Shown: piece by piece, positions 8,701-38,700 of the stretch | Layout of the letters: every line of letters begins with the position of its first letter | Position numbering within the stretch: position 1 is the first letter of the stretch | NCBI GenBank assembly: GCA_001655205.1 | Contig: LPNZ01009306.1 | Span: forward strand, 1-64,000 | Direction of reading: 5' to 3' | Source: Lenisia limosa | Lineage: Eukaryota; Protista; Breviatea | DNA: 64,000 nt | Made by a program: the position numbers and the translations under genes | Notes under the pieces: model-generated | Told to the model about the DNA's origin: nothing | What the model saw: the letters and a program-made list of their open reading frames with translations, nothing else | Database searches by the model: none

Positions 8701-10260
8701 AGGGGTCACTTTCTCTTCAACAATACTAAAAAGTAATTTGCTATTACAAACCATCAAGGTGTTTTTGGAGTTCTTTGAAGGTGTAAGGAATCTGTTCGTG
8801 CATGAAGACCTTGCGGTGCTCAAGGCAAATAGGGCTAAAAAGTAAGTGAAAAAATACATCCATTTCAAAGAAAAGCCAACCCACCAAAACTTCAAATTAT
8901 GGTCATTCTTCAAATGCTTTCCGAGGTTGATCAGGCTAGTAGCAACAACAACATCCTAAAGAATGAGCAATGGGATTATAAGGGTAACAAGCATCATCTT
9001 CCTCACCTCCTCCATGCATGCTCCGCTTTTGCAGCTTGTGTAACAGGAAGGGCAACGGAGAGAAAGCAGCGAAAGAGCCTCTGATTTCACTTGTGCATTG
9101 GGGAAATACATATCTAGATGAATAAACAATGCTCATAACTATGTTAGCTCAAGCAAAATAAAACAGATCTAAGACTGAAAAAAAAGGGAGGGGGGGGGGA
9201 ATGAAAAGACCANNNNNNNNNNNNNNNNNNNNNNNNNNNNNNNNNNNNNNNNNNNNNNNNNNNNNNNNNNNNNNNNNNNNNNNNNNNNNNNNNNNNGCAT
9301 TTTGAAGATAGTACCGAGTATGATTCTTCAGTTGGAGGCGTAATGATGATAGTCTCCGACTTAGCCTGAAACGTTACACTTATCCCTTCAATCCACAATA
9401 AAAAATGCCAGGCTCTCACCTTGCACATACAGCACGCTTTGTCATCGAAAAGAATCCGCTGCTTCATATGGCAACAATGGCAGACGTCTTTATGCCCACA
9501 GGGCCCAATACCAATCATTTCAATTTCTTCACAGCAAACAATACAAGTTTCCTAAAAAAATAAAAAAGCCCTTTGGAAAGGAAACACCAACCTTTCCTCC
9601 AAATAAATCATCGTCATCCTCTGCCTTAGTTGTAGCGGGAGATAAGTGACTCAAAGACTGCTGTTTTGGTTGATGGTGATGATGAGTACGCTGTTGGTGG
9701 CGAGGTTTAAAGAAAGGACGAGGTTTTGTACCTAGATTGTCATGTGATTTGGAGAGAGAAAGCACTAAATCATTCATTGCAACAAAACAAACTTTCGTCA
9801 GGAGCCTCATGAGTTTTGCCACTTTCCTGAGAGACTGAGTTCTACAATGTCAAATACTCATCACTTATGAACAGACAGAAATCCACTCAACCACCTGCTT
9901 ATATGACTTCGTTTTTGGCTTATGCGGAGCAGATACGTGTTGTGGGTTGGACCGGGGGGTGTGGCCACGCCCCCTTCCGCTTGGTGGCGGAGGCTCTTCC
10001 ATCTGATAGATAAATAAGTCCGAAGAGCAATAGCAGACAAACCGTCTTAGGTTTTAGCCTGGGAGGAGACGAGGAGCCAAGCAAAAAGGACGAAGATCAC
10101 TCTCACTGGCAGGTAACGCAGGCTCCCGTGTTGGCTTTTTTATTTGCCGATACGTATTTCGTGTTCTTGGTCTTGATTCACCCTGGTGGTCCTTAATATT
10201 GTGATTTTCAGGACAATCAATTTGGGATGACTGGAGATCAGATTTCATGGGAATGGACAT
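5722..10260 (-). CDS. ZNF598: E3 ubiquitin ligase ZNF598/Hel2 (RING + C2H2 fingers, C-terminal helical domain, UIM-like motif, Lys-rich tail)
   Basis: RING ETCIVCCEEIEMIGIGPCGHKDVCHCCHMKQRILFDDKACCMCK; C2H2 segments HLNKQHFNCYVC and HHFVCQVEEC; DADLQEALALSRAE; tail RRKKKGKKTGVQILDL*. Two N gaps inside. Confidence 0.88.
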
Positions 10261-10559
10261 ACTCAGGTGCAAGGGAATAGTGAGTGTTTTTCAAAAGGGA
10301 ATAAATAAACAAGTTATATTATTGAAAAAAGTTTAAATGAACACCATACAGAAAGGGAAGGGACCTCAGGCGAGTGGCTCAGTACGTCAAATAGTAGAAG
10401 AGTGAGAAGCTTCAAACTCCGTTCATTCAGTAATATTTGACAAATTATTAACAGCAGCTTGATTAAATTAATAAACTCTAAACATTGAACTTTTGAAGAA
10501 ACTTTAATGTATCAAATAATCTGGGGGTATGTTCACCCTAGAAACAACAGAGTCTACGA

Positions 10560-13500
10560 TTGTGCATGAGGAGTCCCGAAAACCCTCAACCTCACACAAA
10601 CACACAAACCCTCCAGGGGTTATATACAAACAATATACAACATAAAAACTACAAACAAAAACAGCAAGACGCTTCATTGCCTCACGGGCTTCACGTTGAC
10701 TCCGTACTGCTTTTGATTTTTCCTTCCTTCCTCCTCCCTCTTATCGTCGTCACCATAATAGTAGAAAGAAATCTTCTTCTTCTCCTTCAGCTCGTCGTCG
10801 TCGTTCTCTTTCTTCTCTTTCTTCATCCATATACTCTCTCTTCTCCTCCTGTCTTCTTTTCCATTCCTCTTCTTTTCACTACCACTTCTCTCAGCGGCTT
10901 CTTCTCAACTGCAGCCTTCTTCCATCTTCTTCTCATTTCTTTCTACACATTAACTTCCTCATTGCTTCTTCACCTTGCTTGTCAATATGCGGAAAACTTC
11001 TCCTGTCCCTTCTATGCCTACTTCATTCATCTTCTTTCTTACTTCCTTCATCCATTCATTATCTTCTTTCATCATATCTTCTGCTACTTCTTCTGCGCGT
11101 CCTCCGTTCTTCTTCAGTCTTCTTATCAGCCTCACCTTCTTCAACAGTGTCCTCATATCTTCATCCATTCTTTTCGTCTCCATCCTTATCGCTTCTTCTG
11201 GTATACTTCTTCCTAATCTCAAAACTCTTCTTCATATCCTCATCTCACTCTTTTCTGCCTCCTTACTTTTCCTCTTCATCATCTCCCAACCGTATTCCCT
11301 TCCATCAATCATACATACCGCAAACAACTTTCTTCTCCATTCACTAACTCCTTCTTTTTCCATTGCTGTAAGCTCCTTCTGTATCCTTCCTTCTGTCATC
11401 TTCCATTTCTTCTTCATGTGTGCTTCTTTTCTCTTTGCGAATATCAGGGTGTCATCAGTGTACTTCAGTGTTACAAATCTTTCTTCTTCCTCCTCGTTTT
11501 CCTCATCCTCTCCTCTTATCTCTTCCTCCAAGTCGTCCGTGTAAATATTGAATAGTCGTGGCGATATCACTCCCCCTTGTCTTACTCCTCTTCTTACTCT
11601 TATCCAGTCCTTAGCGTCTTTCACTCCTGCATAGCTTCCTCTTATCCACACTTCTACTCTTCTCTTCAATCTTCCTTCTACTTCTCTTTTCTTCAATCTT
11701 CACACTAACTCGTCATGGTCCACATGGTCATATGCCTTGGATATGTCGACTGACATAACCTTAACCTCTTCTCCTCTTCTTCTCTTTCGTCTTATCTCTT
11801 CCTTCATACATGCCACTGCCATTATCGTATCCCTTCCTGGAACAAACCCAAATTGGTCGTCCCCTCCTTCCTTACCTATCTTCTCTCTCAGCTTCTTCTC
11901 CAGAATCTTCTCATAAATCTTTCCTCCTGTCGTTCCTCCTCCTATCATCCTCCAATTTCTTCCTTCAGGCCTTTTCCCTTTTCCTTTGAAAATCGGGGTC
12001 ATCCTACACTTCTTCCATTCTTCAGGCATCTCTTCTTCTCCTGACATCATAAGAATGGAAGAAGTGACAGGAGCCATTAGAAAGCTGAATAAAAGAAAAG
12101 TAGCCTGCCTAAAAACCCGACACAACAGAAGAACACAAGAGGACGAAGAAATGCCTGAAGAAAATCAAGAGGAGGATGATGACGAAAGTGAAGAGGAGGA
12201 GGAAGAAGGAGAAGAAAGAGAGATCAATTCGAAAAAAACCGGTGGAATATCGATTGTTTTCGGGGATTTATCGAGAGAAATTCAGTCTTTTTTCAAACCA
12301 AAGTGAAGCCCTAGGTATAACCAAGTTACACAGCACACAGCGTATTGATATTTTCAGAAATAAATATTGTTTGTCAAACTCTGAGTGACCCCCCCCCCCT
12401 CTTTGTTCTCCATTTCTTCTCCGTACAGTTCCCTCATCATCTTCTTGAACACTTCATACGGCTTCATCTCTACCTTTTCATGGATCATCACATCCGGCCA
12501 CTTCTTGTTCTCCTTTTCTTCCATGCTTCCTTCGGGTCTGCCTCCTCCTTGTCTTCTCCCAGCATATTCTTCTGTCTTCTTCTAATTCATCCTTTCTCCT
12601 TCTTCTCATTTTGTTCAATAGGTCTAAGCACTCTTCCCTATTATCCTTGCTTCTTTCTCTTCCTTTCTTTTTCGTCCTTTCTCTCCTTTACCTCCTCCAT
12701 TCTGTTAGAAACTCCTTGTCTTCTTTCTTATTGGCCATTTTTCTTTCTTTCATCTTCTTCCTTGCTTCGGCCTTTCCTTCAGCTATCATGTCCTTTATTG
12801 TCCTTTGATCCATTCCTCTTCTACACATGATGTGTTCTTTTCTTATTTCTCCTTCTCTCCTTCTCTCAGTCTTATGTCATCTCTTCTTTCTTTTTCGCAC
12901 TTCTTTCTTACCTTCGCTTTTTCTTCCACATTTCCCTTTTCTGCTACTTCTTTGAGTATCTTCATTCTTTCTTCCTTTCTTCTTTGAATTGCTGCATCTC
13001 CCTTCTTCCATGCTTCTTCATTCTTCTCCATCCTTTTCTTTGCCTTCTTATATCTTTCTTTACAACCTTCCTCATCTTTTCTGACATCTTCTTCCTTCTC
13101 ATCCAGCTTTTGTATCAGTTCCTTAACTGACTCTTGCATTTCGTGGATCTTTCCTTCGAATTGTTCCTGGACCTCTTTCACATTTTCATTATCATTACCA
13201 TACACGTCTTCCTTTATCTTCTCCATTTCTTTCTTCATCTCCTTCATCACTTGCCTTCCTCTTTCTTTCTCTATTATCAGCTCGGTTGGGTCTTTTCTTC
13301 TCCTCTCATCTACTTGCTTCTTCTCTTTTCTTATCTCTGCTTGATTCTCTGCATTTTTCTGTGTCTTCTTCTGTCTAGTGATGATTGACTCCATTTCTTT
13401 CATTTCTTCCTTCATCTTCTCTCTTTCTTCTTGCAACATTGACACAATGGATCTTAATTCCCTTGATGCTTCCTCTTCTTCTGAATCTCCTCTGCATTTT

Positions 13501-13760
13501 TTCTCTTATTGTGTTTATCTCCCCTTTTACTTCATCATATACTTCCCTTTTTCTCTCATAAACTTCCTCATTATATTATCTTCTTTCTTCATTTTCATCA
13601 ACCTCTCTCTCTCCCTCTTCTTCTTCATCATCTCCTACTGTGTGCTTCCTCCTTCTCTTACCTTCTGGGGTTCTTTTCTCCTGTGATGACGGCGCTGTCT
13701 CGTTGGTCTTTTTTCCTATCGTGAGGTTGAGTCGGGTGGTCGTCCTTGTCGCCACCATTA
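10560..13760 (-). mobile_element. Decayed non-LTR (LINE-type) retrotransposon: coiled-coil ORF followed by reverse transcriptase; internally inverted, deleted and interrupted by stops
   Basis: RT motifs PEEWKK..TPIFKGKG, QFGFVPGRDT, DISKAYDHV, GVRQGGVISPRLFN, YTDD (11451-11462); intronless; strongly purine-rich minus strand unlike flanking genes; upstream Glu/Lys/Arg coiled-coil ORF 12843-13760 with TAA and frameshifts. Ends approximate, no TSD found. Confidence 0.9.
10950..12045 (-). pseudogene. Reverse transcriptase reading frame of the LINE, interrupted by three in-frame TGA codons
   Basis: ORFs 11700-12125, 11232-11696 and 10959-11222 are one frame separated only by TGA at 11700, 11232 and 10959; TAA follows at 10950. 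Confidence 0.85.
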
Positions 13761-14446
13761 TGACAAGACAATTTATTACAAGGCAAAAGAGTCACTTGAA
13801 TGCTTGAATGCTTACTAGAAGGAAGGGGAAGAGGATGAGGGAACGTCGAAATACCAACACTATACATACACAACTGGAAAGAGGAACAATCTGATCAGTG
13901 CAGTCCTGCATCAAAAATTCGCCAAACAATTTATATTTATAGGTAGGGATGACACCAATCAGTGACTTCATCAAGCTTCTATATCACATATTCCTGTGTT
14001 GCTATAAACGGTTTTTCTTTATTTTTTACCAAATAAATAGATTCAACCACAGGAACCGGACAATAAAGCACAGACCTTCACTTACCATTTCGGATGGTTT
14101 TTCAGATTTCCAAATTTTGTAAACACATTTGCCTTATGGTGGGGGAGGTGGCAAAATTTCTTCAATACACTAATAAAGTTTTAAAGCAACAGTTTTATGA
14201 CTGATACGGTTGTTTTGAGGGAAAAGAACACAATCAGACTTGCCTTTTACAGCACACGGCTCAGTCCTCCCTTTTTATTGGGAAATCCAGCTTTTTAGTG
14301 ACTGTTTAAATATATATATTACCTAGTGTTACGTTATCAAAGCAGTTTCCTGCTAATTAACTTTTATTGTAGTTGAATTTATCCCCAACTCGTCCCCATC
14401 CAGCTTTCCTACTCCCCTTTCCCACTTAAAGCCTTTCTAACAAGGC

Positions 14447-27611: not shown

Positions 27612-30520
27612 ATGGCACAAACTGCCGTTGATGTCTCCACCCTTGGTATGCAGTTTTTGTCTGAAGCTGATAAAAGCGATTTTATCTGCAGTATTATGGA
27701 AATTTAACCAATTAAATGGATTAGAAGCAGTTTTGGGGAAGGCTCACATTCTTAGGCAACCCCTCCCCTGTCCTGCATGTCCGTGCTCTCCACGACCACT
27801 GCTCTGAGCAGGTATTTCATGAACCTAAGTACAAAATGCTTTTATACTACTCACCTTCTTTAACACAGGATCCCATTTCCGCCTTCTTAACAAGGAAAAG
27901 GCGTAATTAAACAAAAATTAACGACTACAGGAGCTGCGGGCGGCCTTCTCCCACTTTGGAGCGATCAACCAAGTCCTTGTCCTTACCCACAAACGCCAGG
28001 CCCTGATTGAGATGGCCTCAATCCGCGAGGTAGTCGAGAGAAGGATGTTGCTGGCTTTATTTTATTGGGCCTGGGCTAATAATATGTAGGCTACCAGCGC
28101 CATCACTTTCGGAACCGGAAACCCCATCCAAGTTGGTCCTTCTTTCGCACTCATCAATTACTCACGCTCCACCGAGCTGAACAAAACCAACCGTAGGCGG
28201 CTGGAATATCCTCTGGAGTGGCAACATGTGTGCTTGGGATATCCTCTGGAGTGGCAACATGCTTGGTGTTGCTAAGACATTTAGGTCGTGACCAGCCTGC
28301 GGAGTCTGCCGTCCACAACGGCGAGCACACTGTATTCATGACCATCATGGTATGAACAATACCTTGCGTCCTTTCTTTCTTTCTTTTTTTTTTTTTTTCC
28401 CTTGCTTATTGTCCAGAATCCCCTCTACCCTATCACTGTGGACGTGCTGAATACCATTTTCAGTCCCTTCGGCGCAATCAACAGAATCGTCATTTTCCAC
28501 AAGCAAGGCATTCAGGTGAGAGTGGTGGTACATGGTACCGACCGAGTTGCACCAGAGCTGAATGCGGCGATGGGAAAGGATAGTTTAGTGTTCACCTGTT
28601 AGGCTCTGGTTGAGTTTACCAACGCCAACGCTGCGTTACAGTCACAAACCGCACTCAACGGCAAGGACATCTACGACGGATGCTGCACCCTCAAGATCGA
28701 GTTCTCAAAGGTAAAAAGAAGTTGAGTTGCTTCCGACTTATATGCCTACCAGTGCGTTTTCTGAGAATGATTATGGGGCAAAGCAGCATTAGCCATTTCA
28801 AAATGAAGTAGTAGAGCAAAAAAACGATACAAATCAAAAAGCCTCGTAAATATTGACACACATAGAGCTTAAGGTGAATCTATTTTCAAAAATCAATTTT
28901 TTAGATTGACACCCTCAATGTCCGGTTCAACTCTGAACTTACTCGTGATTTCACAGACCCCAGCCTTCCCACCCAGTCTTCCCAGCGTAAGCTTCCTTCC
29001 TGTCCAGTGTGCTTTTGTTGTTTGTAAATAGTTGGCTGACACATCAGACCCCCCTGCCCAGTTTACCCAACATCAACCTCCCCATCATCAACAGGCTCAA
29101 TTTGGCGGATACCAACAGGTTAGTTTGCCTGCCGGTTTTTGAGTTGCATCTTTCAATTTGCATACTTGCGGATTACCGGGTGTGGGTGTTGTTGTCAACC
29201 CAGTCTATTGAATGATGGAAACAGACCCAGTTTTCATAATTCCAGGCTCCCAACGGCCGCCCCTGCGTAATCATGTACAATTTGCCGACCGACCAGAGAC
29301 CTGAACTTGCTACTGAGCTCTACAACCTCATCACCCTCTATGGTGTCGTACAGAAAATCAAGTTCATCCAGAACAAGGTTTGCTGGGGCTGTTTTATTGC
29401 AGTGTCAAAGTCTGGCGGGTGCTCGTGATGGATTCGGATCAAAACAGAATACTCTGGAAATCCTTGTGAAATATATATATAAATGGGTTCCGTCATTGTC
29501 GGAGAAAAATTGTTTGTTAATAATTCTGTAGCCCGGTACGGCTTTGGTCCAATTCGCTGAACAGTCCATGGCTGACAAGTGCATGGAAATGTTAGACAAC
29601 ACTGTCATTGAAGGCGAAGCTATCCTTGTTCACAAGAGCCGCGTTGGGGGGGGGGGGGNNNNNNNNNNNNNNNNNNNNNNNNNNNNNNNNNNNNNNNNNN
29701 NNNNNNNNNNNNNNNNNNNNNNNNNNNNNNNNNNNNNNNNNNNNNNNNNNNNNNNNGCCCTCAGCACCCTGCTATTTCTCTAATTCACTCAGCACCCTGC
29801 TATTTCTGACTCTCGACCCTCTGAGAACGGTGAAACCTCCTTCTATGATACCGTCAGGTGAGCTGTCCGTCTTTGGGATAGGAAATGCCAACCCCAGGGC
29901 AATGGGAAAACGGAGACAATATAGTACAACACTCACCTTCTCATTCTGTAGCTTCGAGTCATACCGCAACTTCCGTCCCGACTTCAAGAACATGTCCAAG
30001 CCCACAAAGGTAGGAACCGCATTGATTTGCCAACCTAACTCCCAGGTTCTTTTCTTCAACAACACTCCCCCTGACACTGACGAGACTTCCTTCCCGAGCT
30101 ACATGGACGAACTTGACCTCCCTCGGTAAGCCAGGAATCCCGCTATGTTGTTTTAATCTTTATGATTTGACCATCTGACCCCTTCAGCCCGACGCACATC
30201 AAAATGCTGCCCAACAACGACCCATCCAAGACCAACCGTCGTGGTCTTATTGAGTTCGCTGACGTCGAAACCGCCACCAAGGTCTGTTGCCCTCAGGACT
30301 GCTGGCCTTTTTTTTGTTTGTGTCTCCCCCCCCCCCCCCNNNNNNNNNNNNNNNNNNNNNNNNNNNNNNNNNNNNNNNNNNNNNNNNNNNNNNNNNNNNN
30401 NNNNNNNNNNNNNNNNNNNNNNNNNNNNNNNNNATGCGTGCTAATAACGCCCGCGTTGGAGAGCGCAACACCCTTCGCCTCGCCTTCTCACGCCACATCC
30501 TCTCAGAAGAGTCTTCATAA
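27612..30520 (+). CDS. PTB: Polypyrimidine tract-binding protein / hnRNP L family (4 RRMs)
   Basis: PSPVLHVRAL; NPLYPITVDVLNTIFSPFG...QALVEF...LNGKDIYDGCCTLKIEFSK; LYNLITLYGVVQKIKF; SQVLFFNNTPP...GLIEF...LRLAFS. Confidence 0.9.
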
Positions 30521-30963
30521 TCGTTTTTCTTCCAATCGTTTCTGTTTCATGTATTCTATCGAAATATTCAAGAGGTCTGTGACAGTACTGGGTAGCACAA
30601 CTGTTCTCCAATTCTCTTGAGTGAATCTGTGCACGAATAATTAATAAATGATGATATAACTCCAGGTTGACTCCCAGTTGAGATTGCCAGTTGAACAGGA
30701 CAACACACAATAAGAAATCGGAATGTTCTAGAAGAGAATTTAACAAGGATCATCCATTGTTTTTACCTCAAATCTTTTCCCTAAAAACAGCACCAGCCTC
30801 TCTTGTTTTTCTTCATTGCAACATTTAGTTATTCTCTCATTGCACGCAAATAATACGCCGTTTTGACCCTCCCCTCGTGAGTTCTCCACGCCAACCTCTT
30901 CCATGCCAAGGCCAAGACCGTTGTTGTAAAAGCCGGGCTTTGCCATTGTGATCAACTGGCGTG

Positions 30964-33900
30964 ATGAAGTTTGAAGGGACGCTTGCGGCGTATTCGTCTC
31001 CAGAATGGCGTTCAGAGTACATTAATTATCCAAAACTGAACCAGCTCACCAAGGTTGCCCCCCCCCCCNNNNNNNNNNNNNNNNNNNNNNNNNNNNNNNN
31101 NNNNNNNNNNNNNNNNNNNTGCTGCTGTGAAGGGAGATGTCTCTTCTTTGTTTTCCGATGGTATGAAGTGAAGTTGTTTACTTATTCTTTAGAATTAAGT
31201 CCACTGCTCCAAGGCTCTCCCCTTCAACAGGTTTGTTGCTACCCAGAAAAAACAGATAGAAAAGATAAAAAGGGTTTATTTGATTACTATTTATGTATTC
31301 GAAATTCACCCTCTCCAGATTTACGATGTGTCTGAAGAGTTTCGAGTGAGCTGTGAGTCTGAGCTTTTCAAGGTTGACTCCTTTTTCCATTTCAAAAGTA
31401 GGCCTTTAAGGCATTCATCATTCATTATTATGTACTTCTCTCGCGTCGATTATGACTGCTTTGTTTGTAACCATTCAAGTTACAAACTTCCTCAAACGGC
31501 AGGAAGTCCTCTTCCACCAACTGGAGAGACTGCAGCAAAAAGAGGAGTGAGAATTGGATCGCTGGCATAACCCCTTCAGAGCAGCGGAATTGAACGCTTG
31601 GGAATTCAACAAGAAATGGAGGAAGTTACGAAAGGCTTTTATTGAACAATACCGAGGAATGGATTTGCTGATGAATTTTGCTACTATGAACCGTGGGTTT
31701 CTTACATCTTGTTTAACAGATTAACTTTATTCAGAATTAGGTTTTGTCAAAATGGTCAAAAAATACTCCAAATTTCTTTCCCATGCACCAGTGGTGTACC
31801 CTGAAATTGCAGAAAACCGTGTACCATCCCTTAATATCACATGCGAACCCGCAGTATGCTTATATTGTAATTCACCCACCCATCTTTGTTATGGTTCGAC
31901 AAATAGACAAGACAACGTGACCAATCATCTACATTTGCATGTGCACCTAACCCCCCCCCTCCGCAGCAGCTCTCACTTCCGAAGGACCGTGACCCTTGGG
32001 TGGAGGCGTTTAGTGACCTTCTCAGAGCCTCGCACGTCTTTTCAACTTACAGTCTTGAGGAAGCTCTCTCAGGAGCAGAAGTGGGTGCCATGATCCGACA
32101 ATTTATTATTACATACGAACCATGGGTAAAAATGTTGTATGTAAAGGATCAGATGAATTTTTCGCTAAACATAGGATATTATATAAAGTTGTAATTATTT
32201 GGACGCGTTACCAAATAGGACGTTATCAATGGCTACTTTGGTGTTGATGAGAAGTTTCGAACGCACCAGCGCAACAGCAAATTCATCCCCCAAAACTCGA
32301 CACTATTCGGCAGTAAGGGCACCGTGCTGCTGACATTGTAGTTATCTGGGTGTTGCTGGTCCTTTCTCTGTTCTTCCTCGTCTTCAACGATTGGTCTCAC
32401 CAGGAATTCCAAGAGAATATGGTAGCCGAGGGTATTGTTTTTAAGATAATTGTGATCATCCAAGCAATGCTATAACCAAGTAGCGATACCATGAGGCCGT
32501 CTATAGGTCATTCCGACCGCTCTTCCTTGGACAGACAATGTTCTTACTTTACGCCCTCAATGTAAGACCCAATATCCAGTGTTCATATTACGTTTCAGGG
32601 CCTGATTTGGACCTCAAAAAAAGTCAACTTTGTATTTATCTTCCAAGTGAGTATATTTACCCTCAGTCAATGGTAACCACCGCAGTTCAACCCTAGAGAC
32701 TACCTTACTCCATACCACATTCTTGAACTTGGCTGTGCAATGATTTCTTTGACTCTTGCCACAATCTATCTTTATCAAAGTGTTATTATTGGACGGATAA
32801 ATCCTCGTGAGTTACCCGAATAACGTAACATTGTAGCTTTTGGTTTCGAACCAACCACATACCCTCTACTTCTCATTGCTCTTCATTTTATTCTTCTTAT
32901 TTTGCCACTCCCAATCCTCCACCACCGCTCCCGCCTTTGGATTATCAAAATTATCACACGGATTGCAATGGCTCCTTTCAGACGGGTGCGTTTCCAGGTT
33001 TGCCGACTTCGGAGCCCTTTTGTTATCTCACACCTTAGGACTTTTGGGTAGCTGATCTCCTCACGTCCTTAACCCAAGCATTTGTTGACATGTTTTTCAT
33101 GACCTGTTTTGCTACCAGTGGACTCTACGCTTCAAATAAGGAGGAATTCCGTAAGCTGTGTGATTCTCTATCACGCCTCCAGCCCAACACAGTGTCTGCA
33201 GCACAAGCCCGAGTAGTTGGCCCTTAGTCCTTATCGGCGGTATGCGTTGCCTTTTTCTTGAGAAATTATGTTGCTGGTGATATCTCTCAAAATAAAGAGT
33301 TACCTTTTCTTCTTCCACGTGTCACATGATAGCTCTTCCCTACATCTGGCGATTCCTCCAATGTCTCAGAAGATATCACGATTCTAAAAAGGTCTGCATT
33401 ATCGTTGCCAATTACTGTATAGGCCTTCCCCCACCTTGTGAATGCGCTGAAATACTCTTCTGGAATTCTTGCTGCCATTTGCACTGCCGGTACGTTGCTG
33501 GAACCCTGGCCACTTTTATTTCGTCCAATGACTGTTGTAGCCTACGCAGCCAACGCAACTCCGGATGGCGATTGGTGGGGGGGGGGGTGCTCCTCCAAGA
33601 GAAGTTGGTTGCAGCAACTGACAATGTCGTAGGGATCGATACCGAGTTGCTTTCCTGCTGTCCAGTATTGTCAAAAGCGCTTTCGTCTACTCCTGGGATA
33701 TCTACATGGATTGGGGTCTTTTCTCAAGGTCAGGCCTTTGTTTATTGACAGACACAGACGACCCAGCCAGTCGCAGTTCGTGTTCTCCGCAAAGTCCATT
33801 TACGTCATCGCATGTTTCACGTTGGCTTCGTCCCTTTTACTTCTTCCAAATGACCATTTAGGAACTTGTTCCTGCGACTGACCTGGCTTGTTGGTATGGC

Positions 33901-35661
33901 AGTGGAGTTGAGTAACATTCTCCTTCGTCAACACCTTATAACAGTGGTGTCTGTATTGGAGATACTGAGACGCACTCAATGGTCCATTTATCGGTTTGCT
34001 GTTTTTCAGAATTATAAAGACATTGCGTTGCCTTAATTGTCTAGGCTTGAAAATGAACACACGAACAACGTTGGAAGCTTCCGTGCAGTCAACCTTGTCC
34101 CCCTTCCCTTCAGTCTCACGACCTGGGCCAAAGACTCTTCAGCCAGCGTGGGTCTTTTGTGCTTTTTCTTTATGCTTGATGGCTCCAGTCCAATACAATG
34201 GACAATAGATTGTTTTTAATTAATACTCGCATTCTTTATTTCAAAGAGTAAGTGTCACCCCTCAGGTGTGCCAGAAGTGCCCAACCGTGTTTACCCTTTT
34301 TCGCCGCCGTCACCACTGCCGCCGCTGCGGAAAAATTTTCTGCATCAAGTTGGCTCTGATGTTAAGATACCACCCCTTGTCAGTAGTACATAACCCCCCC
34401 AGATGCGCGAGTAAGAAAACCACTGTTTCTGAAGTTGGAGGGAGGAGTCATGCTGGAGGGGAGGAGTCATGCTGGAGGGAGGAGTCATGCTGGAGGGAGG
34501 AGTCATGCTGGAGGGNNNNNNNNNNNNNNNNNNNNNNNNNNNNNNNNNNNNNNNNNNNNNNNNNNNNNNNNNNNNNNNNNNNNNNNNNNNNNNNNNNNNN
34601 NNNNNNNNNNNNNNNNNNNNNNNNNNNNNNNNNNNNNNNNNNNNNNNNNNNNNNNNNNNNGAGTCATGTAATGTGAGATGAACAAATGCCAACATTCTGT
34701 TGAAGAAATACATTTGACCCTTTCAGCTTGGGGGAGACGCAGTGCGGGTGTGTGATGCCTGTTTCGATATTGAAGAGTCGAGGCCTTCACGCCCACTTGC
34801 TCCTTGCCATCGAATGCTGCATAAAAGCCAGACCCCGTATGGCATGTTGACATATGTGGCCCTTTCCGACCCCTTCATCCGCACTCCCAATGATGACGGT
34901 TATCTTCCCGAATCCATGATGCAGGAAACTGACTACTCTGACGCCTACCCCGCCTCGCCTTACTCCTTCCATGTAAGCTTTTGTCAGGCGCATTATTGTG
35001 GTTTGAATTTGACTTTTAGGGTTCCCCGGACTACACATACCAAACCGCCACCCCAAGCGCCTCGGTGAATTACTCCGAAGTTTGTGGGAATATTCAGTCG
35101 ACGAAGTCTGGTGACGCCGTTCTGCTTCTGAGCAAAGCCTCTGTTACTCCCTCCTCCAGCAGGCTCTGGGAATTTTTTTTTACCCTTCCTCAGAAATCTG
35201 AGCCGTCGATACACGGCTCAGACGTTCAAACCCCCGTCATCGTGCTTCCTCTCGACACTGCCTCGTCACACTCCGACATGGCGCCACGCAGTCCTTTGCG
35301 CCAATGCAGCCCAGACCGACCCCACATCACAACATCCGTAACCTCCAATGATGGTGAGTGGGGGGGATGGGGGTCTCGCAGAACATAGTTCACATAATAT
35401 AAAAAAACATAATATGATATGATGTACTGACAATTTCAATTTGGTTTACATTTCATATTTCTACCTATTACCATCATATTCCATGTTGCAGAAAACCGAC
35501 TTGGCGTTCTAGGAAGCTTGCCAAAGTCACATTCTATCGACGATTTATACTGCACCAGCCCCATGTCCATTCGTGATGGTCGCGGAGGTAAGCCCTACTA
35601 TCAATTGATCTGTTCAGGCGAGACAACAATCACTCTTGCTGATTCCGATCAAGATGAATAA
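30964..35661 (+). CDS. XPR1: SPX-EXS phosphate exporter (XPR1/SYG1/PHO1 family) with C-terminal FYVE zinc finger and Ser/Pro-rich tail
   Basis: MKFEGTL...PEWRSEYINYPKL (SPX); FRRVRFQ...FADF..ADLLTS, LPYIWRFLQCLRRYHD, NALKYSS, RLENEHTNNVGSFRAV (EXS); then WAKDSSAS|VCQKC...RRRHHCRRCGKIFCIK|CAS...|RVCDACF (FYVE). Confidence 0.88.
34434..34667. repeat. 18-nt G-rich minisatellite (gaggagtcatgctggagg)n in the intron splitting the FYVE domain; runs into an N gap
   Basis: At least four visible units before the gap and a partial unit after it. Confidence 0.9.
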
Positions 35662-35770
35662 AACTATCTTGATGAATTTTTCTGATTTCAATCCCCATGA
35701 CCCATGAGTGACGTAAATTATCCAATAATCTACGAAAACACTCGTTCAATTATACCTAGTGGAGGGGGAG

Positions 35771-38700
35771 TTAGCAAGGCTGACAAACTCTGTCTGCTGT
35801 GTTTGTGCATTCAGTACCGATGCATTCGGCACACGTCTGGCAAGCTAAAGGAATAACAAGACAGCGCCAGCCACTTACCCGTGCAAACATCATTGGAACT
35901 CATAGCTCCAGTGCTCACATGAAAGTGGTTCGTCCTATACCATGATGCAACACAAGAGCCTTACGTGCAAGCGCCGCAAGTTTCACCATTTCCACCCGCA
36001 CGATTGAGAGTTGAACAATCACTGCAGCCTCTATCAGAGCTCGAAATGCAACTAGCAATTTGGTACTGAGAATCTGTGCAAGTGGTACATGCTAATAGAG
36101 ATAAGCGAAGAACTGTCCTCACCTTGGCATATTGACACCCCAGAGGTACTCTCACTGGGATTAAAATATCCAAATTTACACTCTCCACACAAGTAATATG
36201 AATCAAGGCCTTCTCTGTTGAGTTCAGCACATGAAACAGTGACTGTATTTTGGTTATCCTGGCACTCAGAAAGAATAGCCTTCTCATAACCACCCACTTC
36301 ACAATCTAAATATAATAAACAAATATCACGTGTGAGTCTCACCTGAACACACAGAAGAGGCAGCAATGTCTCCATTGATATTATTGTATTTACCAGCAGC
36401 ACACGATCCACAAGTCACACCATTGTTGTTGTACCTCCCAATGGAAAGGCATGAGATACATGTTCGGTCTGTTTGCCCAGAACATAGTGTGGCTTCGTAA
36501 TACAAGTTATCACACGGAGATGCACAGCCTAATCAGGTGAGTAAAATACCCTCTGCATTCAAACCTGAACAAGGGGTATTTGAATTGATATGTCCTGAGG
36601 TGGACTCATACATATTTGAGGAGCATGTCCCACAAATAACTCCATTATTTGAGTGCCGTCCAATAGCACTACAACCTGAGCAGACAGTATTGGACGTGGT
36701 TGTACAGAGTGTTGAAATGTAATGTGTTGCTGAACAAGAAGAGCAAGCTAGACAAGTTAGAAACAACAATGCCCCACCGTTACACGTTGTTGTAGCGGCT
36801 TCGTTACCGTCTCCTTCCCTCCAGTGGGTCGAAAGACAGGCGCCGCAAAGGTCTCCACTTTGGGAGCCTCGGTGAAGGTCACCAGAGCAGCTTCCGGTGT
36901 TGGTATTTGATATGCTTGTGCAGCTGTCAATGAGGTACTCATCTGCGTCGACTGTCGAGCAGGCTGGGGGTGTGAGGCAAGGCGGCTAACTTACCATAAC
37001 AGGAATTGGTTCCAAAAAGCCACCCCAAGATCGGAAAATAATATTCATCAGCACACTTTCCGCAAATGTCACCATCCCCATTGACTCGATGAATCGATTC
37101 ACAAGAGACACATTGGAGATTGGCTGTTTTGCTACAGTGTTATATTTGAGTAGAGCCTTTCAAACCTGCATTCAGCATCTCTGAAATGTGTATTGGCACA
37201 GGATGCCTTACAAACTGCAGCATTATCTTTCACAAACAAGACCTACTTGAGCACAGCGTATTAACACCGATGGTTCCTCCATCGCCAGACCGAAAGTAGT
37301 TGGTTGAACAAGTACCGCACGTGACCCGATTGTGGCCATCTCTGTGGAGAGACGCACAAGTTGCGCAAGTAGTCTGCGCTGTCAGCGTGCACGCTGTGAC
37401 TTCGTAGCTTGTCGTCAAACAGCCGACACATTCTGAGTAACATGAACAATGAATACAGTGAGTGGTACATACGTCCGCACATGGTGTTCGCTGAAATGTC
37501 GCCGTCGTCGGCCTTCCAGAATCCTGTACTGCATGTGCCACACGTGAAGCCATCTCCACCATTTCGGAACTTCGATGAACAGTCCGTGCATACAATGTCT
37601 GTTGTAAGTGTGCACGTCCCGGTTTTGAATTTGGAAGTTGGGCAAATTGTTCGACATTCTAGAGAATTATCAGAACGTAATCCAACCAGTGCATGGGAGA
37701 TTGCCGTCTGTGTCCCCTGCTGATGTCTCAAAGTAGCCAACATTGCATGAAGAGCACAAGTTTCCTTCCATGTGAAAAAAGGAGACACATTATCTTACCC
37801 CATTCGCCTCCTCTGTTGATGTCGATACACCATCCACATTGCATGTCGGAGGTGGTTGTGCATTCCGCCGACTTGTATTTACTGAATGTACATTCGGTTT
37901 CACAAGCTGACAATTAAAACAGAAAAAAACAAAAAAAACTAACCAAAACAGTTAGAATTGCTGTTAATACCGCCTGATGCAATGTTATAGTAACTAGGTG
38001 AACAATGGCCACATGTGATTCCGTTGTTAGAGTTTCTGAACTGAGCGGAACAGTCCCCACAGGTGGTATCAGAAGTCTACGGTAATTAGCAAAAACAGTC
38101 CTTACAAGAGTACAGGCGTTTGTGACATAATGTGTATTCGGACAAACGGTACAACCTTAAAACAGTTAAACATCGTTGTACAAACATACTCGTGCATTCA
38201 GACTTTCCTGAAATTGCTCCTTCTAAGAGGTGGTAGTAGGTGCTCTGGCAGGTTCCACAGAGGGTGCCGGCAAGCCCGTTGCGATGAAGGGATGTGCACG
38301 TTCCACAGACCTAATTGTCAATTTTAAGGTGACAAACAGTGTTAACATTGCTGCATGGGGTATGAAGATAATTTGAAAACTCAGCACATAATTGACAGTC
38401 TAAACAGTTATACAAAGAGTTCAACAAACATTGGCACATTGAAATGTAGCTTGGGAAATCCTCAGTTCCATGGTAATATCCTGGAAGACAGCTTCCACAC
38501 TTGTTTCCACTTTGATTTTCTCGAAATACATTTGAGCAGATTTCACACTGGGTGTCAACTTTGGGCTGACATGCAACCTTTAGGAAGGTGGTGTTTTCAT
38601 CGCAAAGATTACAGCCTAAATGATAAATATTTTTTGGGAATAGACTATTCGTAAGGCTTTGGGCAAAAATCCAACCCCAAACTGTTACATGTGTCAATTC

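Follow-up and report, generated by a model that had tools for sequence, protein, structure and literature searches.

Phosphate exporters that combine an SPX domain with an EXS membrane domain are, according to published abstracts, the only known dedicated phosphate exporters of eukaryotes. In the solved structures of the human member, XPR1 (SLC53A1), both the SPX domain and the C-terminal tail lie inside the cell, and the tail acts as the intracellular gate: it starts at His616 and carries a 'C-plug' made of C620, G621, E622 and F623, the SPX domain bound to the inositol pyrophosphate InsP8 sequesters it through an R627-E137 pair, and residues 633-696 are disordered (PMC11926068). Published summaries describe the outcome of this SPX/InsP8 logic as an exporter that opens at high cytosolic phosphate. 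How the C-terminal tail gates SPX-EXS exporters became clear only in 2024-2026, and it is debated whether these proteins act on the plasma membrane or on organelles (Golgi, endosomal or storage), with evidence that includes PHO1 located to the Golgi and to the trans-Golgi network (TGN) and the PXo bodies of the fly. For plant PHO1, an endomembrane localisation and a vesicle-loading model have been described (PMC13521290). Here we analyse a 64,000-nt stretch of the genome of the protist Lenisia limosa (contig LPNZ01009306.1, positions 1 to 64,000; the window, whose coordinates are used throughout), in which a single gene on the + strand (coding region 30964..35661) encodes an SPX-EXS exporter that runs on into a complete FYVE finger of the type that binds phosphatidylinositol 3-phosphate (PI3P).

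Transcript data confirm that the exporter and the finger are encoded by one gene and one spliced mRNA. Two public sequencing runs contain the stretch, a DNA-like run (X1, with 0.95-0.99 of the sampled words) and a polyA RNA library (X2), and their assembled contigs, the only data used, were placed on positions 30900-36800. A single 1322-nt RNA contig from X2 (depth 9.5) spans 33333-35691 with thirteen excised segments, each of them GT...AG; its joints include 34147>34266, 34348>34403 and 34433>34727 in addition to ten other GT-AG joints. In its spliced form this contig is one open reading frame, which leads from the middle of EXS through FYVE to a stop after D-S-D-Q-D-E. The X2 contig depth is zero within the introns at those joints and again from 35825 downstream (to 36800, the end of the stretch compared with the RNA contigs), indicating that the RNA signal is not DNA carry-over. 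A second RNA contig of 303 nt connects 32876-33239 to the first, and other contigs cover much of the SPX exons. The EXS/FYVE junction (34045-34433) also lies on one ungapped DNA contig covering 30900-34465. X1 is possibly the same sample as the window assembly, so that its DNA contigs are not independent evidence, while the RNA is independent.

The decisive joint removes a GT-AG intron of 118 nt (34148..34265) with zero contig depth. Its donor GT (34148-34149) stands directly past the AGC serine codon 34145-34147 and its acceptor AG occupies 34264-34265; retention of this intron would add 23 further residues before a TAA at 34217-34219. The original prediction had read these sites from the DNA, proposing a donor at 34148, an acceptor at 34265, FYVE exons at 34266-34348, at 34403-34433 and from 34727, and a read-through stop at 34219, and all of these coordinates hold, with the spliced 34147/34266 joint present in the polyA contig. 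Its claim of one gene is borne out as well: the last EXS exon encodes the WxxD half of the finger, no in-frame ATG is found in the FYVE exon or ahead of it as far as a stop at 34221, and a single RNA contig covers both parts. Two separate genes can be ruled out on the same grounds. Among the assembled contigs, read-through to 34219 with a separate FYVE transcript was not seen, the sole assembled RNA form being the spliced one.

Misassembly at the run of Ns at 34516-34660 was considered and ruled out. The run lies wholly inside the 293-nt intron 34434..34726, so that no coding sequence is touched; the RNA contig bridges it in frame (34433>34727), and in an X1 DNA contig, which crosses an 18-nt tandem repeat, 34463 is followed immediately by 34661. 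This repeat (34436-34515, 4.4 copies, 96% matches) adjoins the gap, which is most likely a repeat-collapse problem; the gap length and the repeat copy number at 34436-34661 in the window are probably assembly artefacts.

The finger itself is, judged by its sequence features, a complete canonical FYVE finger of the PI3P type and a predicted lipid reader. FYVE exon 1 (34266..34348; Pfam and PDB matches) begins with V-C-Q-K-C, the first CxxC, and continues through a hydrophobic loop (T-V-F-T-L-F) into R-R-H-H-C-R-R-C-G. The 31-nt FYVE exon 2 (34403..34433), defined by its RNA joints, completes the third zinc-binding cysteine pair (C-I-K-C) and starts the variable loop, and the domain ends with L-G-G-D-A-V-R-V-C-D-A-C-F and the fourth cysteine pair (34727..34765), as found by translation and motif search. 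The 27-aa exon alone reached E=1.1e-9 and 38.7 bits in Pfam FYVE (cut-off 27.8), a match well beyond chance, and the solved structures that it matches best are FYVE domains known to bind PI3P (ZFYVE16, EEA1, Hrs, Vps27 and others). All three FYVE signatures are present (WAKD at aa 689-692, RRHHCR at 710-715, RVC at 741-743), as are eight zinc cysteines within aa 689-750 (C698/C701, C714/C717, C722/C725, C743/C746). We consider it extremely improbable that the fused form is not the main product, with intron 34148-34265 mostly retained, or that the finger is vestigial or a purely structural zinc module. Rare variants are dropped from contigs, but a mostly retained intron fits poorly with zero intron depth in the sole assembled form, with a WxxD encoded in the EXS exon and with a FYVE exon that has no start codon of its own. 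Likewise, some FYVE-like domains do not bind PI3P, but here the three PI3P signatures and the eight cysteines are intact. The reading frame of the fused form is kept through five more exons to the stop.

The transporter part of the gene product resembles known exporters in its core. The transmembrane/EXS exons (32219..33993), identified by Pfam EXS, matches to human XPR1 and identity to fungal SYG1, are 32219-32312, 32342-32421, 32484-32561, 32599-32646, 32686-32806, 32837-32997, 33039-33150, 33183-33239, 33333-33391, 33423-33489, 33541-33574, 33633-33728, 33758-33820 and 33862-33993. They are followed by the last EXS exon (34045..34147), which can be aligned with XPR1 (612-629) and with Arabidopsis PHO1;H1. 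It holds LENEH, the C-plug segment N-N-V-G-S-F-R-A-V, VPLPF, the motif at which the family normally terminates, and then W-A-K-D, the exon's final residues being T-T-W-A-K-D-S-S-A-S. Three EXS exon pieces each exceed the Pfam EXS cut-off (28.1-29.7 bits against 25), and pieces match the solved structures of human XPR1/SLC53A1 at residues 346-391, 393-418, 515-537 and 612-629, as well as those of the S. pombe SYG1 homologue and of PHO1;H1.

We compared this core with the published list of phosphate-coordinating residues in human XPR1 (PMC11736019). Tool alignments show that D398, D529, M532 and D533 are kept and that N401 is Thr. Against the same list, R459, R466, P475, K482, Y483, R570, W573, E600, R603, R604 and R611 are kept when the gene model is read by motif and spacing, and R472 of XPR1 is Lys in the gene product. 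The assignments of R570, W573, R603 and R604 rest on the Pfam EXS match together with sequence reading; the exon that holds R570-R604 (33863-33991) gave no PDB match by phmmer. As nearly all residues of the XPR1 phosphate pathway are kept, the protein is likely to be a working phosphate exporter, with an SPX sensor at its N-terminus, an EXS core of ten helices and a gate segment at its C-terminus.

At the N-terminus, exon 1 (30964..31053; MKF..PEW..Y22) matches Pfam SPX positions 1-26 (E=5e-5) and aligns ungapped to human XPR1 residues 1-25/26. The remaining SPX exons and the linker (31120..32125), placed by RNA joints, Pfam SPX positions 287-314 and motif search, comprise 31120-31160 (preceded by 17 nt in an N gap), 31193-31230, 31319-31397, 31480-31546, 31580-31692, 31735-31853 and 31907-32125. 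The Pfam match at positions 287-314 (E=2e-4) was obtained with exon 31551-31721, so the domain is recognised as SPX from both of its ends, each fragment scoring under the whole-domain cut-off. Y22 is kept and the lysine cluster G-F-x-K-x-x-K-K-x-x-K is found at aa 151-161. Codon 26 (31039-31041) encodes Asn, however, at a position that in XPR1 and most SPX domains is occupied by Lys26, a member of the phosphate-binding cluster; given this exchange, the affinity for inositol phosphates is possibly altered. With Pfam matches for SPX, EXS and FYVE, the FYVE signatures and the spliced reading frame, the architecture first proposed for this locus, SPX plus EXS plus a complete FYVE, stands.

The full gene model has 30 exons in one open reading frame without internal stop and combines RNA joints, GT-AG sites and homology. 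ATG 30964 is the first ATG past the in-frame stop at 30949, and the TAA at 35659-35661 is followed by the start of the 3' untranslated region, up to the end of the RNA contig (35659..35691). Each of the 29 introns has GT-AG ends; their lengths range from 29 to 293 nt, with several of no more than 29-33 nt. RNA supports the joints in three regions: 31053 to ~31366, ~31523 to within the exon that follows 31853, and 32876 to 35691. For 31367-31522 and 32082-32869 the model was built from GT-AG sites plus homology. Fungal SYG1 aligns to aa 286-700 of the model at ~32% identity with few gaps (blastp, 1e-50), which supports the exons that lack RNA cover. Two in-frame acceptors are found after 31853, an AG before 31907 and an AG before 31967, and the RNA contig extends only 44 nt into this exon; the choice makes a 20-aa difference in the linker between SPX and the membrane domain, giving a product of 935 aa (acceptor 31907) or ~915 aa (acceptor 31967). 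Further upstream, the N gap 31069-31119 conceals coding sequence, part of exon 2 and its acceptor being absent from the assembly. The RNA contig leads from 31053 through 17 letters absent from the window to 31120, and these 17 nt of exon 2 are known from RNA alone. Homopolymer runs of G or C (29650-29660, 30330-30340, 31060-31068), translated as GGGG or PPPP ahead of the X run, flank several N gaps, which suggests assembly breaks at homopolymers rather than real structural features.

The position of the finger relative to the gate is of particular interest. The Trp of the FYVE WxxD comes 4 residues after VPLPF and ~15 residues after the C-plug, with no linker, and this spacing indicates that the finger stands in place of the disordered tail and is attached directly to the gate. 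Within the C-plug segment (N-N-V-G-S-F-R-A-V-N), G621, F623 and R624 of XPR1 are kept, and C620 is replaced by Val, E622 by Ser and R627 by Asn. The long flexible segment of the protein lies after the FYVE finger, not before it: the C-terminal tail (34766..35658), delimited by RNA joints and composition, is a 185-aa segment rich in Ser, Pro, Asp and Thr, its exons (34727-34972, 35020-35079, 35194-35353, 35492-35587 and 35618-35658) giving no Pfam match.

The reading we prefer, to which we give an even chance, is that the exporter's place of residence or of action is restricted by PI3P that the finger reads in cis. With a cytosolic tail and a very short tether, the finger would bind PI3P in the cytosolic leaflet of the transporter's own membrane, and since a 4-residue tether should let it reach only that leaflet, an action in cis is favoured over a contact site in trans. 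XPR1 is dimeric in the solved structures, and two fingers could add avidity. The exporter would be retained and/or active only where membranes are rich in PI3P, for example on early endosomes, phagosomes or vacuole-like compartments, and there the SPX domain would go on reporting the cytosolic phosphate status via inositol (pyro)phosphates. A tether in trans, with the exporter in the plasma membrane or endoplasmic reticulum and the finger gripping PI3P on another organelle to form a contact site, would have a precedent in protrudin/ZFYVE27, a membrane protein with a FYVE domain, and the disordered 185-aa tail could recruit partners. However, a finger placed 4 residues past the last conserved membrane-proximal motif cannot span a cytosolic gap, and the long flexible segment is C-terminal of the FYVE finger rather than between it and the membrane, making this arrangement very unlikely.

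The polarity of the protein bears on the direction of transport. In an endosomal membrane the protein would sit with the same polarity as in the plasma membrane, so that export would run from cytosol to lumen, i.e. loading and not release; surplus cytosolic phosphate would be moved into the compartment, for storage or exocytic disposal. Canonical polarity and an SPX logic that favours export at high cytosolic phosphate both point to loading of the lumen, which would fit the vesicle-loading model of PHO1. For this reason the suggestion in the original prediction that the protein releases phosphate from an acidocalcisome, phagosome or vacuole appears doubtful, SPX and tail being cytosolic and loading being the canonical direction. 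In favour of release of luminal phosphate to the cytosol, this breviate would be a phagotroph with phagosomes that pass through a PI3P stage. In addition, the family has been described as a phosphate channel, whose direction could follow the gradient, and the EXS-only protein ERD1 is regarded as moving phosphate out of the Golgi lumen into the cytosol (PMC13521290). Nevertheless, the cytosolic SPX domain and tail set the polarity, and an exporter that, in the published summaries, is opened by SPX/InsP8 at high cytosolic phosphate would respond in the wrong sense for taking up phosphate from a food vacuole. We therefore regard release on a phagosome, vacuole or acidocalcisome as unlikely, and luminal release in general as the less likely direction compared with loading.

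A further explanation overlaps with placement in cis and differs in giving the finger gating as its main role. Here PI3P would be a second key on the gate, the docked FYVE finger either pulling or holding the C-plug away from the intracellular entrance or clamping it shut; we put this forward tentatively. The human gate opens by sequestration of the tail via the R627-E137 salt bridge and closes by E622/F623 (PMC11926068). With Asn at the position of R627 and Ser at that of E622, part of the canonical latch is missing in the Lenisia protein and could have been replaced. The finger sits 15 residues past the plug and 4 past VPLPF, without a flexible linker. Compartment-specific gating by phosphoinositides is established for the endolysosomal channels TRPML1 and two-pore channels (TPCs). 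On the other hand, the second key is read purely from the sequence, and the substitutions could be neutral, as PHO1;H1 carries Ala and Lys at the 620 and 622 positions. A coincidence-gated phosphate channel, in which phosphate would flow only where PI3P and an inositol pyrophosphate on the SPX domain coincide, is possible in the same guarded sense. The more general proposal made earlier, joint control by inositol pyrophosphate and PI3P, is a plausible hypothesis.

Several points weigh against the preferred reading of PI3P-restricted placement in cis. The support for lipid reading, localisation and transport comes in each case from sequence comparison. An integral membrane protein needs no FYVE finger for attachment, and 'targeting' is a weaker rationale than regulation; the plausible roles are accordingly retention in PI3P-rich membranes, control of the gate by PI3P, or both. 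The exchanges K26>N, E622>S and R627>N may have altered the canonical mechanism of InsP8, SPX and tail. It is uncertain which way phosphate would flow on an organelle, given that the family is called channel-like and that lumen-to-cytosol transport is described for ERD1 (PMC13521290). Finally, the RNA evidence consists of assembled contigs, and minor isoforms without FYVE are possible.

Our literature search found no paper with SPX, EXS and FYVE together or with 'EXS domain' and FYVE, the papers naming XPR1 and FYVE, or SPX domain and FYVE, had unrelated content, and no precedent was found for a transporter with a C-terminal FYVE finger. A 2026 review of the PHO1 family over all eukaryotic supergroups describes SPX-EXS as highly conserved and lists known recombinations, with FYVE unmentioned (PMC13521290). 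The searches of databases for this architecture were of low power, as exon pieces and not the whole spliced protein served as queries. Protein representatives searched with the 53-aa exon 32839-32997 gave 4 matches, the Lenisia protein itself not among them, from a query too short for ranking relatives, and with a profile built from exon pieces aligned to a scaffold homologue, a weak query, only the scaffold's own family scored. The search for fungal SYG1 relatives showed no FYVE among the 120 SPX+EXS proteins listed, all of them ascomycete and of little bearing on protists. In the metagenome contigs of the Joint Genome Institute (JGI), the exact 38-nt spliced junction had 0 matches, as had a degenerate pattern with R-[RK]-H-H-C-R-x-C-G placed 37-47 codons downstream of ENEH, which can match only where the first Glu is coded by GAG, the stretch is free of introns and the spacing is unchanged. 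A 70-aa junction peptide gave no candidate with three shared words among proteins of 39-122 aa, and the ESM Atlas returned only noise for the 34-aa junction exon (scores <=0.65). There is a real chance that unremarked SPX-EXS-FYVE copies exist in protist data.

What we describe is a lineage-restricted domain accretion, supported by RNA, at the mechanistically most interesting spot of a heavily studied transporter. As a 'Rosetta stone', the fusion argues that, in one lineage at least, PI3P-positive endomembranes are where the exporter works. The fusion further provides a compact construct with which to ask whether a phosphoinositide can control the XPR1 gate, and if coincidence gating were true, the protein would be the first lipid-gated member of the SLC53 family. 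The value of the observation is limited in that it concerns a single gene of one poorly studied protist and that FYVE is a promiscuous domain.

Other features of the window lie outside this gene. Upstream on the + strand, the exon 29240-29422 matches Pfam RRM_5 (E=3.8e-5, slightly under the cut-off), an RRM type that occurs in PTB/hnRNP-L-like proteins, and is probably part of a separate multi-exon gene that ends before 30900 and is interrupted by the N gaps 29659-29756 and 30340-30433. A reverse-transcriptase fragment on the - strand (11235-11696; Pfam RVT_1, 42.8 bits), likely a decayed retroelement, is found amid low-complexity open reading frames in a region of strong GC/AT skew (10000-14000). 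Downstream of the exporter and on the opposite strand (37264-37788, -) there is an open frame of 175 aa that has many Cys-x-x-Cys and Cys-Gly-Thr-Cys spacings and gave no Pfam match.

In comparison with known systems, the Lenisia protein shares with human XPR1/SLC53A1 (8x5f, 9dvj) an SPX domain with Y22 and the lysine cluster, an aligned EXS core and the residues D398, R459, R466, P475, K482, Y483, D529, M532, D533, R570, W573, R603, R604, R611, G621, F623 and R624. It differs in the substitutions K26>N, N401>T, R472>K, C620>V, E622>S and R627>N and in its C-terminus, where XPR1 ends in a disordered tail of ~65 aa without a domain and the Lenisia protein has a FYVE finger and 185 aa. The LENEH..G.FRAV..VPLPF segment is nearly identical to that of Arabidopsis PHO1;H1 (9jf8; residues 756-778 of 784), but PHO1;H1 ends 6 residues past VPLPF, whereas the Lenisia protein runs on into FYVE. 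PHO1 acts from Golgi/TGN/endosomal membranes (PMC13521290), the type of location we propose here, but no lipid-binding domain is described for its family. Fungal SYG1 and S. pombe Xpr1 (9w0x) have ~32% identity in the membrane domain, and the exon of transmembrane helix 8 matches the SYG1-homologue structure. Among the 120 matches listed, in contrast, the fungal relatives have SPX and EXS as their only Pfam domains, two of them with unrelated extras. Drosophila PXo, likened here by description only, is the fly's orthologue of XPR1; it acts on the PXo bodies, an internal organelle that stores phosphate, and is not known to have a FYVE domain. Protrudin/ZFYVE27, also likened by description only, is a membrane protein with an atypical FYVE domain and is not a transporter. 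The finger itself has the signatures, the cysteine spacing and the hydrophobic loop before the basic motif of the FYVE domains of EEA1 (1joc), Hrs (1dvp), Vps27 (1vfy) and ZFYVE16 (3t7l). The canonical FYVE proteins, however, are soluble and recruited to endosomes, whereas in Lenisia the finger is joined to the gate segment of a polytopic transporter.

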